Assembly: GCA_900088475.1 (NCBI GenBank)
Contig: FLMG01000761.1
Location: 62,001-126,000 of the forward strand
Direction: 5' to 3'
From: Hyphochytrium catenoides
Lineage: Eukaryota; Protista; Hyphochytriomycota
Length of the DNA: 64,000 nucleotides
Part shown: positions 58,054 to 63,268 of the stretch, in pieces
Numbering within the stretch: the stretch's first letter is position 1
Layout: every line of letters begins with the position of its first letter
The notes under the pieces: model-generated
What the model was told of the DNA's origin: nothing
The model's database searches: none
What the model saw: the letters and a program-made list of their open reading frames with translations, nothing else
Program-made: the position numbers and the translations under genes

Positions 58054-58505
58054 CTATGGAGGTGGATACGGCCCGGAAGATGGGATGAGAATCTTTTTCT
58101 CTCTCGATTGTTGAGGTTGGCCGAGCTCTTTCTTCTCTCCTCTCTCTTTCACGTCTTCTTCCTCTTATCAGTTCTCTCTTTCTTCTCTCTCCTGGATGAG
58201 TGTTTGACACTCCTCCTTCTCTTCCCTTGCTCATGCGCTTCGTCTCCCTCTTGCTCTTGCTCTCTTTCTCTCCGCTTGATGTTGCTCTCTCCTCCTCTCC
58301 TGTCAGATTGTCAGGAGCTTGTTTCCTAAACCTTCCACCTCGGCAAACCTAGCATCCGCGTTCTTGTCCCGTGACAACACGACCAGGAAAACAGGCGCTT
58401 CTCTCGCAGTGAGGCCTTCCTAACTCATTCCTCTCTTTCTGTGTGCACGTTACTCTGAAGTTAGTAGCAGCTTTTCTCTCATTCGCTTGCTATCTGGACA
58501 CCGTC

Positions 58506-61500
58506 ATGGCCTCTTCCGTCCGCTTCGAGCTGCTGCGAAAGGAGGATCTTCCCGCTTGTCTAGCGCTAGAGCGCGCCGCCTTTCCAGCGGATGAGGCAGC
58601 GAGTGAAGGAGCCCTGCAGATGAGACTAGAGGAAGCACCAGCGTTCTTCCTGGGCTGCTACACCGAGAAGAAGAAGCTGATCGGGTATATCTGCGGCACA
58701 TTGACGGCCGAGACGACGCTAAGCCATAGCACGATGTACACGCACAACCCGCTGGGGTCCACGCTCTGTGTACACTCCGTCGTGGTCGAGAAGGAGAGCC
58801 AGCGGCAAGGCATCGCGACTGCCATGATGAGACATTATGTTAAGAAGATGGTCACTGACCATGTAAGGCAAGGGCTGACCATCTGACAGCTATCTCTATG
58901 AGAACCGTCTCTCTCCTTGCTATTCTCTGACGTGCAATAGTCTGTTTGCTCTCTGCTCTGCTCTCTCTTGCTCTCCAGCTTCTACCACTTTTCTACCCCA
59001 TTCTGTCGCCTTTAGACCAGCACTGTCCTATCGTTCTTCTTATATGAAGTCCTCTATTTCTCTCGGCCAGTCTCCAGCTCTCTCTGTCCTTTCTCATTCT
59101 CCATCTCTCTCTCACTGTCCTCTCTCTCTTCCATCAGATGCTATCTCGATGGGTACGTTCTCTCTCTTCTTCATATTATGATCGCTGCCTCTTCTGACTC
59201 TCTTTCCTCTCAAACCAATCCTCTTCCTCTTTCTCATAAAAAAGCTTGAGATCCGGCGCATAGTTCTCGTGTCAAAAGCCCACCTCATCCCTTTCTATGT
59301 TAATTGTGGCTTTCAGCTGGATGGAGAATCCTCTCTGGTGCATGGTATAACGGGCTCTACTGCTCTTTCTGTCTTTCCTCTTATCTAGCCGTCTTTTTTG
59401 GCCCTCTCACTCTCTTTCGGAGGGATGCTCTATCTTTCTAGCACTCTTCCTCGCTCTGTTCCCTAATCTCTGCCTCACTGGCCTGTAGTCAATCTCTCGT
59501 CCCCTTTGTTCTGACCCACATCTCTCTAGCGTTTACCTCTGTTGGTTCTTGCTCTGTCTCTTTCTGATTCTGTTTCCTTGTCGCTATATGTTGGACAGGG
59601 AAGGACCCCTGGTATGAGCTCTGGTACGACTGCTTTGTGAACCGCTTCGTGAAGATCTATCAAGTGAGCAAGCACAAGCGTTCTTTCTCTCTCTCTCTCT
59701 CTCTTTTTCTCTCTCTCCACCCCTCTCGCTCTCCTCATCGCTCGTACGTTCTGCTGTTCTTCTCCTTCTCTTCCTTTCCTTTCTAGTAGCTTTTGATTAC
59801 ATTGAAACTTGAATCTCACTCTTGCTGGTTCCTGTGGTGACTCTTTTGCGCGCACTCTTGTAACTGGATTGCTAGTTATGTCGTCCTTCCTTTCCTATCA
59901 TCCAAAGAGACGAAACACGTCTGCATGCCATCTTCCATTTCTGCTGGAAGCTGAAGCTTCCCTCTCTCATCTCTTGACTTCTATAGGTGGACTCCTTCAC
60001 GGACCAGATTTTCAAAGGCAATCCCGCGGCTGTGGTTGTCTGTTTAAAGCCTGGGGACCTCCTGATTGCTGACGAAGAGGACGAGGGAATGATGCAACGC
60101 ATTGCTTTGGAGATGAACCTCAGCGAGACGGCGTACGTGAAGAGGAAGAAAGAAGGAGTGGACAACATCTTCTACTTGAGATGGTTCACCCCAGGTGATG
60201 GACGCATCACGTAATGTCTCTCCCTGCCCCCTTTTCTTCTCTCTGTCATCTCTTGTTCTTTCTCTTGTTCTTCTTCTTCTCGTCCTTTCTCTCCTTCTTC
60301 GCTTTCTACACAGGTTGTACACTTCTGCCGCCGCGTTTTCAAGTAAACTCAAACTCTGCCGAACGTCTTCCCTCGCTTTCTCATTGACCGCAGCTGCCGA
60401 AGTGGCGCTGTGTGGCCACGCGACTTTAGCTGCCGCTCATGTGTTATATAACGAGGGCTTCGTGGACAAGGATAAGACGATCGAGTTCCACACAAAGTAA
60501 GGTGCTTCTCAGCAATCTCACCCCTTTCCAAGCCATCATGACAGCTATCATGGCCTGCCTTACTGTCGTCTTCGTCCCCTTAAGCCTTCCCACTGTACCG
60601 TTTTCCACGGGTCTTCCTCTCTTCTGTCGCCGTCTCTCTGTACGTCTTGTGCTCTCTCTCCGCTTTTTGCTCTCACTACTTCTACTCTGCAAAGGCTCAT
60701 AGCGGAGCTGTTCCTTTCTAACTCCACGTTTATTCGTTGGCCAGGAGGAGCGGTGTCCTCAAAGCCTGGCTCACCACCTCCTACTCGGACACTCCTTGGA
60801 TCTGCCTTGATTTCCCAGGCGCCACTCCCAAAAAATTGACGGGAGAGGTTGCTTCCTCTCTCCAGATAGAGAAAGCACTGAACATAGAAGCGAAGGACGT
60901 TCTCTTCCTTGGGGAAGACAGAACCAGCGCCTTCGTGGAGATAACAGATGAGGCATTTAAGCGGTTACGGCCCGATAGCAGCCTGATCAGGGCCATGCCT
61001 TTCCGGTAAGTTGGTCTAGAAGTACCTCTTTTACCTTTGAGGACCATTGTATGCCTCAATCGTAGGCATCTACCACGCTCAGCTAACGGAGAACTGCCAC
61101 CTTCTACGTTAAGACTGTGTCTAGGACTACAATTTCATCTTCTCTCGCCGTTGTTTGCTTCAACAGCTGTTGTTCTCTTTGTACTCCGTCGCTCTAACGT
61201 AGCTTGGATTACTTTGCGCAGTTCTCTCTTTCCTCCTATAGTGCCGAACCTGCTATCATTATTTTGCCTTCCTTTTCGCCTTCTAATTACTTTGTCTCAC
61301 TTTTTTTTCTATTTCTGTCTTAATGTCGGGGGATCGTCAGGGGCCTTACCGTGACATGTGAGGGCAAATATCTTGAGAAATATGACTTTGCTAGTCGCTA
61401 CTTTGCACCTCAAGTTGGAGTGGAGGAGGATCCTGTCACTGGCAGTGCCCATTGCGCTCTCTGCCACTACTGGGCAGCAAAGAGAGAGAAGACCCAGCTG

Positions 61501-61638
61501 CTAGGACTTCAATCCTCTTCGAGGTCAGGAGAGGTGCTAGTCAACCTCCAGAAAGACGGCAGAGTCTTTATCTCAGGGCCTACCGTAAAGGCGTTGGAAG
61601 CGACAATGCCCATCACGCCCAAGTTCTACGTGAGCTAG
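58506..61638 (+). CDS. Fusion protein: AANAT/Paa1-like GNAT acetyltransferase + PhzF/PBLD-family isomerase (7 exons)
   Basis: GNAT part: LERAAFPADEAAS..LCVHSVVV..QRQGIAT..|LVSKAHLIPFYVNCGF..VH|GKDPWYE. It continues in frame to PhzF: KIYQ|VDSFTDQIFKGNPAAV, EMNLSETAY, LRWFTP|AAEVALCGHATLA, SRYFAPQVGVEEDPVTGSAHC. Stop at 61638. Confidence 0.9.
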
Positions 61639-63268
61639 GAGAGAGACAGCACACAGCGGGCATCCAATATGGAAAGAAAGAGAGACTAGAAGAGAAAGAG
61701 AGAGAGATAATCGATAAGAGGAGTAGGGAAGAAATGGAAAGAGAAGGAAAGGGGAAACGAGCTAAGACAAGAAGGAGGAAAGAGAGAGAGAGAAGAAGGG
61801 AGAAACGGCTGCACTCGGGAAGGCAACAAAGGGAGATTCGAAAAATCTAGCGGAGTACATGTGGTTCGCGCTTTTATATAAATAGGTTCACACTTTTTGC
61901 AATAGATAACACTCTTTTTGCCCCATAAGTAACTGCTATAGAGCTGATGGCTTTCCTTTCCCTGTCGGGCCTTAAATGAAAGCCATGGGAAAGAGAGTGA
62001 GCTAATAGAAGATACTGGGGTAGGAGAGATGCCGAACTAGGGTGACGGTGTGCTTCCGTTTGTGCAGAGAGTGGACGCTCACAGGTGCGTGAATGAGATG
62101 ACGACTGACAGATGGTAGGGACACAAGCCCCAGGCCAACCCTAGCACCTGATGATGCAGATCCGCGAGGGAGACACTGAGAAAGAGCTAGATACCGCCAT
62201 CACTCACCTCTTTGAGCGGGGACTAGTTCCTCTTCCGTCTTCTCGTTCTCTTTGGGGCGAGCTTGCTTGCGTGCAGCCTAACTCCACACCTCTTTGGATA
62301 GAGAGGTGTTTCTAGATCTAGCACTACCGGACGGACAATGCCCGTGAATAGCCAGAGATGAAATTAGAAAGCTGCCGAACATCCTCTAGCGAGACCTCCC
62401 ACCGACGTCTTTTAGTACGTTTGAACGTGTTTAGAAAGAAAGAAGCTGGTTCTACTAGCTGCTACTTCGAAGTCCACCTCCTTTCGGCAGCAGAAGACGG
62501 GACTATCAAATGTCAACGCCGATAGACGATAGTAAACAACAGACAAAAGAAAGATAAGGAAAGGTGGCCTTCCCGTCAGAGTGCTTTGCTGGTGGTGGTG
62601 CAACACGTAAAGTTCCTCTGTTGAGCAATTGCTAATAACCTACTCCCAGCAAGTTTATTAACAGAGAGGATGAAGTACGTACTCCGGAGTAGGTTCCTTA
62701 TGACAAGGTTGACGCCTCGGCTGAAGTTAGGGTTATTTAGTCAACAATGAACTTTGGGTCTATGACTCACGGCTTCACTTTCTCTTCGGTCTTGAGGAGA
62801 ATGCCTTTCAGTCTGGGAGTCTCTTCTACTGCTCGGGGCAAAGGTTGAGACTGCTAACCCTTCTTCCTCTTACACTGGTGCAGAAGTGCTTTGTGTTTAC
62901 AGTTTCTGTATCCCATGAGACGTGAGACAGAGTCAAGAAGAAGCCAGCAGCAGGGTGAATTATTAGCCTTCAGCAGTACTCGTAGTAGAACTAGCCTTAC
63001 CTTTCTCTTTCTCTTCATCGTCTTCTTCTTCCTTTCCATGTCCCTCTTCTCTTCATTTTCTTCCGTTATCTCATTTCTCATCTCCGTTTCTGGTGTATCT
63101 TCTTTGCAGATGCCCCACCAAGCAGCCGCTTCTTGTACCAATCGGAGAGCTAAGGAAGAGATGGAAAGGAAAGAGAAGACTAAGAAGAGAGAGACAAAAA
63201 GAAGAGAGAAAGAGAGACAGAGAGCGGAGGGAAGAAAGAGCGCTTCAGAGAACAAGAAGAGAGAGAGG

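Follow-up and report, generated by a model that had tools for sequence, protein, structure and literature searches.

Introduction

Enzymes related to AANAT, a type of GNAT, acetylate a broad range of amines in non-vertebrates, where they are thought to be detoxifying. Diatoms and oomycetes were found to have AANAT homologues by Pavlicek et al. (2010), who proposed a role in amine detoxification; their paper does not mention any fusion (PMC2897805). PhzF, a very different enzyme, isomerises an amino-substituted dihydro-aromatic acid by means of Glu45, giving an aminoketone (PMC5524880). Both kinds of domain may be found in one protein: Wang et al. (2016) listed oomycete proteins with AT_1 and PhzC-PhzF domains, called 'PifHAT3', found one homologue in Thalassiosira pseudonana and considered them putative novel histone acetyltransferases (PMC5112689). 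We describe here a gene of this kind in Hyphochytrium catenoides. It is found in a 64,000 nt stretch of contig FLMG01000761.1 (positions 62,001 to 126,000), which we call the window, and occupies positions 58506–61638 of the plus strand.

This gene is a divergent member of a known, widespread fusion family. An initial annotation, made from the letters of the window, had implied that the architecture was new; it was in fact reported in 2016 (PMC5112689), and over 100 database clusters contain it. In the literature we have searched, PMC5112689 is the only paper which names this architecture, and no paper links AANAT with PhzF or PBLD. Papers on PBLD found in the same search treat signalling, not chemistry.

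A single gene with seven exons

Positions 58506–61638 of the window form a single seven-exon nuclear gene coding for a GNAT-PhzF protein: as to gene structure and family membership, we see hardly any room for doubt. The exons add up to 1392 nt, which correspond to 463 codons with no internal stops (Table 1). All six introns are of the GT-AG type and are rich in pyrimidines (64–74% C+T in the coding strand). Reading phases agree, being 0, 0 and 1 for exons 1–3. We have used the joined frame for length and stop counts only: all sequence searches of the window protein were carried out with single exons, or with database homologues standing in for it.

When the exons are added as separate fragments to an alignment of 41 fusion proteins, they tile it end to end. 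Columns with a conservation of at least 90% have the same residue in the window in 82 of 89 cases. The Gly coded by the codon split between exons 2 and 3, which is absent from the exon fragments, is one further highly conserved column. The tiling and the agreement in conserved columns are far beyond chance.

The junction between both domains is found in the family as a short segment, which goes from the V-H at the end of exon 2 to the V-D-x-F of the PhzF domain. Its modal length is 22 residues, and it begins with G-x-D-P-W-F/Y-E-L. The window junction has exactly 22 residues, the split Gly and the 21 codons of exon 3. The initial annotation had proposed that a bridging exon of 65 nt carries both the C-terminus of the GNAT and the start of PhzF, and the match of exon 3 to the conserved junction of the homologues bears this out.

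A different interpretation would be that two genes, one for a GNAT and one for a PhzF protein, were joined by mistake, the bridging exon being a coincidence. The gene model is based on genomic DNA alone, and retention of intron 3 would yield a GNAT-only product ending at 59786 (ORF, open reading frame, 59637–59786). Nevertheless, the PhzF part cannot start alone, because a TAG codon (59984–59986) lies in frame immediately upstream of exon 4 and there is no usable ATG. The first in-frame ATG in exon 4 corresponds to residue 35; a protein starting there would lack the first strand and the G-N-P-A motif. Going back from exon 3 in its frame, one reaches a stop at 59565 without meeting any ATG. In all solved PhzF-family proteins VDxF begins at residue 7–9, hence 6–8 residues come before it. 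The first PhzF strand is formed by the last six residues of exon 3 and the VDSF of exon 4, so that exon 3 supplies the required preceding residues. Besides, exon 3 agrees in length and sequence with the junction which over 100 fusion proteins have in common, and complete transcript-derived ORFs of other species hold both domains. A wrong merger of two genes is extremely improbable.

The open frame, the conserved junction and the existence of homologous fusions all agree with the single spliced gene of the initial annotation, which joined an AANAT/Paa1-like GNAT to a PhzF-family domain. Its first three exons were exact, with GT/AG at every border and consistent phases; the region that it left as '59987 onward' has been resolved into exons 4 to 7, with a frame free of stops.

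We should also note that retention of intron 3 would extend the frame by 41 codons, up to the stop at 59786. The resulting GNAT-only product, with a low-complexity tail, is a possible minor isoform.

Table 1. Exons of the GNAT-PhzF gene, with positions in the window.
Feature	Position	Strand	Contents
Exon 1	58506..58862	+	ATG at 58506; first two thirds of the GNAT; acetyl-CoA motif A Q-R-Q-G-I-A; AANAT His122 equivalent
Exon 2	59245..59344	+	GNAT helix and strand; P-F-Y motif, G-F motif; last base is the first of the split Gly codon
Exon 3	59599..59663	+	65-nt bridge: last GNAT strand G-K-D-P-W-Y-E-L, linker of about 7 residues, start of first PhzF strand (ending K-I-Y-Q)
Exon 4	59987..60194	+	PhzF start: V-D-S-F, G-N-P-A; catalytic Glu in N-L-S-E-T
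Exon 5	60394..60496	+	L-C-G-H-A-T-L motif; His is the PhzF His74 equivalent
Exon 6	60745..61005	+	Variable PhzF middle: end of N-terminal half-domain, start of C-terminal half-domain
Exon 7	61341..61638	+	C-terminal PhzF half; S-R-x-F-x-P, E-D-P-V-T-G-S-A-H; Asp is the PhzF Asp208 equivalent; TAG stop 61636-61638

Individual exons also agree with the family. There is no in-frame ATG upstream of 58506 back to a stop at 58410, and database homologues begin at the same Met. For exon 2, tblastn matches with fusion homologues cover 59251–59346, and the family-invariant residues Y135, G139 and F140 are present, as are C243, G244, H245, A246 and T247 in exon 5. Exon 6, the variable middle of the PhzF fold, has no Pfam match when taken alone; it is matched by tblastn with five homologues (P0035, P0118, P0104, P0077 and P0123) and occupies family columns 271–369 without any gap.

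Low-complexity tracts are found on both sides of the gene, CT-rich upstream (58100–58460) and AG-rich downstream (61640–61830). They resemble the introns, and the many short 'ORFs' which they contain are composition artefacts.

Predicted structure

The structure was modelled with AlphaFold2 (AF2) for homologue P0009 (454 aa), the closest full-length fusion relative, rather than for the window protein. The mean confidence of the model (predicted local distance difference test, pLDDT) is 94.7, with a predicted template modelling score (pTM) of 0.86; the pLDDT is about 93 across the 7-residue linker. Residues matching exon 3 form two strands, 156–161 and 169–175. According to this model, the two domains, joined by about seven residues, probably form one rigid unit. 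The window protein would probably be a cytosolic, two-domain protein of 463 residues. Judging from their conserved residues, it is quite likely that both domains are catalytically competent.

The acetyltransferase domain

The N-terminal part, with about 160 residues, is a GNAT of the AANAT/Paa1 type, a putative small-molecule amine acetyltransferase. Enzymes of this type N-acetylate their amine with acetyl-CoA. Exon 1 alone is recognized by Pfam as Acetyltransf_1 (E = 1e-7, 32.5 bits, the cut-off being 20.7). Its five matches in the PDB are all AANAT, for example 1cjw at 9e-6. The acetyl-CoA motif A (Q/R-x-x-G-x-G/A) is present in this exon, the family consensus being R-R-x-G-x-A. His122 of AANAT (sheep numbering) aligns with a His in the window, which is conserved in 40 of the 41 family members. 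A candidate equivalent of Tyr168, chosen by the invariant P-F-Y-like motif, is found in the P-F-Y of exon 2.

The predicted fold points in the same direction. In a Foldseek search with the P0009 model, all GNATs among the matches listed are AANAT chains: 1l0c and 1cjw have a template modelling (TM) score of 0.87, with a root mean square deviation of 2.3–2.5 Å. A protein-language-model search places the GNAT half nearest to Atlas clusters named serotonin N-acetyltransferase, which we consider as a lead only.

These results may be compared with the function suggested by Wang et al., a histone or protein acetyltransferase in which PhzF would be an accessory module. Proteins with AT_1 and PhzC-PhzF domains were placed among the oomycete histone acetyltransferases by their domain content (PMC5112689), a classification based only on a generic Acetyltransf_1 domain. 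AANAT is the sole solved protein which matches the GNAT half in sequence, as it is the only GNAT among the fold matches listed. Pfam does not find any chromatin-reading domain in the window exons or in P0009, only generic GNAT models and PhzC-PhzF. The catalytic residues of PhzF are invariant, which fits an enzyme rather than a scaffold. A histone acetyltransferase seems highly unlikely to us. As AANAT is what this GNAT resembles most, the published 'novel histone acetyltransferase' label looks wrong, and probably is.

The PhzF domain

The C-terminal part, with about 300 residues, is a predicted PhzF-fold isomerase of the PBLD / 1s7j / 4dun subtype. Three of its exons are recognized one by one by the Pfam PhzC-PhzF model (PF02567, cut-off 27 bits): exon 4 (E = 6e-17, 62.4 bits, profile positions 1–60), exon 5 (E = 1.6e-7, 31.5 bits, positions 62–94) and exon 7 (E = 2e-19, 70.6 bits, positions 194–278). 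In the PDB, exon 4 matches 1s7j at 2e-8 and exon 7 matches 4dun at 1.4e-14. The NLSET, LCGH and DPVTGS motifs listed in the initial annotation are all found in the translated exons, and the catalytic Glu (S-E-T), His (C-G-H) and Asp (E-D-P), present in the window, are invariant in all 41 family members.

The subtype is indicated by the PDB matches of the C-terminal half, 5e-29 for 4dun and 7e-28 for 1s7j, compared to 3e-8 for PhzF proper and 4e-6 for YHI9. The fused domain is 36% identical to a PBLD-like protein from fish, and 35–41% identical to many standalone bacterial proteins. We have discarded PhzF proper, the isomerase of trans-2,3-dihydro-3-hydroxyanthranilate in phenazine synthesis, as an identification of this domain: identity is only 22–24%, the E value is far behind that of 4dun, and the gene is a single eukaryotic one, which has no phz genes as neighbours.

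The PhzF fold is shared with diaminopimelate epimerase, and the domain might be an amino-acid racemase or epimerase, the GNAT acetylating one of the stereoisomers as in D-amino-acid detoxification. D- and L-amino acids had already been suggested in the initial annotation. The model of P0009 does match DapF, hydroxyproline epimerases and O-ureidoserine racemase, with TM scores of 0.56–0.67, and the Cys of L-C-G-H is invariant in the family. Nevertheless, the PhzF half is much closer to 4dun and 1s7j (0.90–0.92) and to other PhzF-family chains (0.71–0.78) than to these two-Cys racemases, and its invariant residues are the Glu, His and Asp of the PhzF type. The GNAT resembles AANAT, which acts on amines without a carboxylate, and is not known to resemble D-amino-acid acetyltransferases. 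We consider a racemase very improbable.

A side observation concerns a PBLD-like protein from the fish Danionella cerebrum (P0228, 764 aa), which contains three tandem PhzF domains (1–273, 268–498 and 514–728). This may be a real triplication or the result of merging tandem PBLD paralogues.

Distribution of the fusion

With exon 1 as query, a full HMMER scan yields 150 best cluster representatives, 32 of which match the window's PhzF exons collinearly as well. Among the best 120 relatives of P0009, about 115 hold both Pfam domains. Altogether, more than 100 protein clusters have an N-terminal AANAT-like GNAT and a C-terminal PhzF. Named fusion proteins come from Phytophthora, Pythium, Triparma, Chrysoparadoxa, Fragilaria and Epithemia, to which MMETSP ORFs marked 'type:complete' should be added. 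Cluster look-ups add Aplanochytrium, Entomoneis, Pelagomonas, Polykrikos and Vitrella. The Vitrella brassicaformis version (748 aa) has a GNAT-GNAT-PhzF arrangement. The lineages involved are oomycetes, labyrinthulids, diatoms, bolidophytes, pelagophytes and a chromerid. Proteins with Acetyltransf_1 and PhzC-PhzF, which the initial annotation proposed to search for, are widespread in stramenopiles and present in some alveolates.

As far as its sequence can tell, the window gene is an orthologue within this conserved family. It is a distant one: the protein is about 40–45% identical to any sampled member, and in the proteins retrieved, identity to any single window exon does not exceed about 57%. 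A scan of the genome assembly gives one PhzF locus and one GNAT locus of this type, both of them being this gene; no others were detected.

The same type of GNAT, as matched by exon 1, is found in other architectures: GNAT-GNAT-acid phosphatase (664 aa), the Vitrella protein mentioned above, GNAT-Mss4 (385 aa) and HMG box-GNAT (419 aa), represented by P0001, P0002, P0022 and P0032. Some of them may be merged gene models.

Bacterial and archaeal genomes were scanned with the family alignment. The 80 closest PhzF loci are all standalone. In a tree of PhzF domains, one branch separates fused from bacterial domains with a Shimodaira-Hasegawa-like approximate likelihood ratio (SH-aLRT) of 89, a value which is not decisive; the single-exon rows of the window are too short to be placed. 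In BLAST searches with each exon, the similarity of the window to fused PhzF domains is about the same as its similarity to bacterial ones. Since neither the tree nor the similarity scores place the window, we have argued a common origin from the shared junction.

One of these 80 loci shows an unusual arrangement. In a Caldilinea sp. metagenome-assembled contig (JBDHWM010000424.1, L032:2519-3958), a gene coding for a 195-aa GNAT is found 63 nt upstream of a gene for a 262-aa PhzF-family protein, in the same strand. It is the only GNAT-PhzF adjacency in the set, and its GNAT is missed by the hidden Markov model (HMM) of the fused GNATs. The pairing may be due to chance.

Possible function

The explanation that we favour as a whole, and which we find reasonably probable, is a fusion enzyme with two activities that would act in sequence on one amine-bearing metabolite. 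In a first step, the PhzF domain would isomerise the metabolite through an acid/base proton shift. In a second step, the GNAT would N-acetylate the amine of the product, or that of the substrate, which would become trapped or detoxified. The chemistry would be consistent: PhzF proper yields a reactive aminoketone (PMC5524880), and an AANAT-type enzyme would cap an amine of this sort. Coupled, sequential action on one metabolite, taken by itself, is suggested by the fusion alone and must be considered tentative, it may well be incorrect.

Several points weigh against this explanation. The gene is known in this organism from genomic DNA. In motif A (58791–58808) the window has a Gln where 41 of the 41 fusion proteins have an Arg, although the classical GNAT motif is still satisfied, and the position of AANAT His120 is occupied by a Cys. 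Within 3 kb of the 80 closest bacterial PhzF relatives, neither tblastn nor the fused-GNAT HMM detects any AANAT-like GNAT, and clustering of the neighbouring ORFs at these loci does not reveal any conserved partner. The link between isomerase and acetyltransferase comes therefore from the eukaryotic fusion only. As noted above, the same type of GNAT is also fused to acid phosphatase, Mss4 and HMG box, it may be a promiscuous partner. We know of no activity for any fusion member, for PBLD or for any protein of the 1s7j type.

Some of these points are also what one would expect if the fusion is real and its domains are uncoupled. This is the main rival explanation: a broad-range amine acetyltransferase and an isomerase with independent housekeeping or detoxifying activities, co-expressed in one polypeptide. 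The same type of GNAT is found alone, in tandem and with other partners, the bacterial relatives of the PhzF domain have neither an AANAT-like partner nor conserved neighbours, and non-vertebrate AANATs have broad substrate ranges (PMC2897805). On the other hand, the fusion has been kept from oomycetes to a chromerid, with a short junction conserved in length and sequence; the P0009 model is confident as one rigid body, as shown by its pTM; neither domain is found outside the fusion in this genome; and some of the other GNAT fusions may be gene-model artefacts. Uncoupled domains seem rather unlikely to us, and we prefer a fusion enzyme acting in two steps.

An even wider proposal is that the conserved, rigid fusion reflects a real two-step pathway, in which PBLD-type isomerases act on an amine-bearing metabolite whose product is then N-acetylated. 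This is possible, albeit doubtful. If it were true, it would bear on the PBLD-type isomerases of animals, plants and bacteria. PBLD has been much studied in cancer and in antiviral signalling, rather than for its chemistry. The persistence of the fusion over much of the stramenopile and alveolate lineages provides a testable hint: the PBLD substrate may carry an amine. This hint is not specific to the window, and any cultured diatom or oomycete would be better suited to follow it. For the annotation of this genome, the gain is one gene with two predicted enzymes, each of whose domains is found only here.

Comparison with known systems

Each half of the protein has solved relatives. Arylalkylamine (serotonin) N-acetyltransferase, AANAT (1cjw, 1b6b, 1l0c), considered here together with yeast Paa1, is the only solved family which matches the GNAT half by sequence. 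The window keeps an equivalent of His122, and a P-F-Y motif with the candidate for Tyr168. Identity to AANAT is about 24%, and the window differs in the Cys found in place of His120, in the absence of the regulatory flanks of vertebrate AANAT and in the fusion of its GNAT to a second enzyme.

Among solved structures, those nearest to the C-terminal half are 1s7j, from Enterococcus faecalis, and 4dun, from Clostridioides difficile, with 33% identity. They and animal PBLD have the same Glu, His and Asp motifs as the window; unlike the window protein, all of them are standalone proteins of about 260–290 residues, with no known substrate. PhzF proper from Pseudomonas (1u1v, 5iwe) has the same fold, and equivalents of its Glu45, His74 and Asp208 are found in the window, but it belongs to a different subfamily.

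The closest described system is the 'PifHAT3' family, with Acetyltransf_1 and PhzC-PhzF domains. Its database members include Phytophthora infestans PITG_21166, which may or may not be the XM_002895006 entry of the paper. The window gene differs from this family in its moderate identity, its six introns and the Gln which replaces an invariant Arg in motif A. It has the domain order of the family, its modal junction length and most of its conserved columns, and aligns with it collinearly from the first Met up to the C-terminal end.

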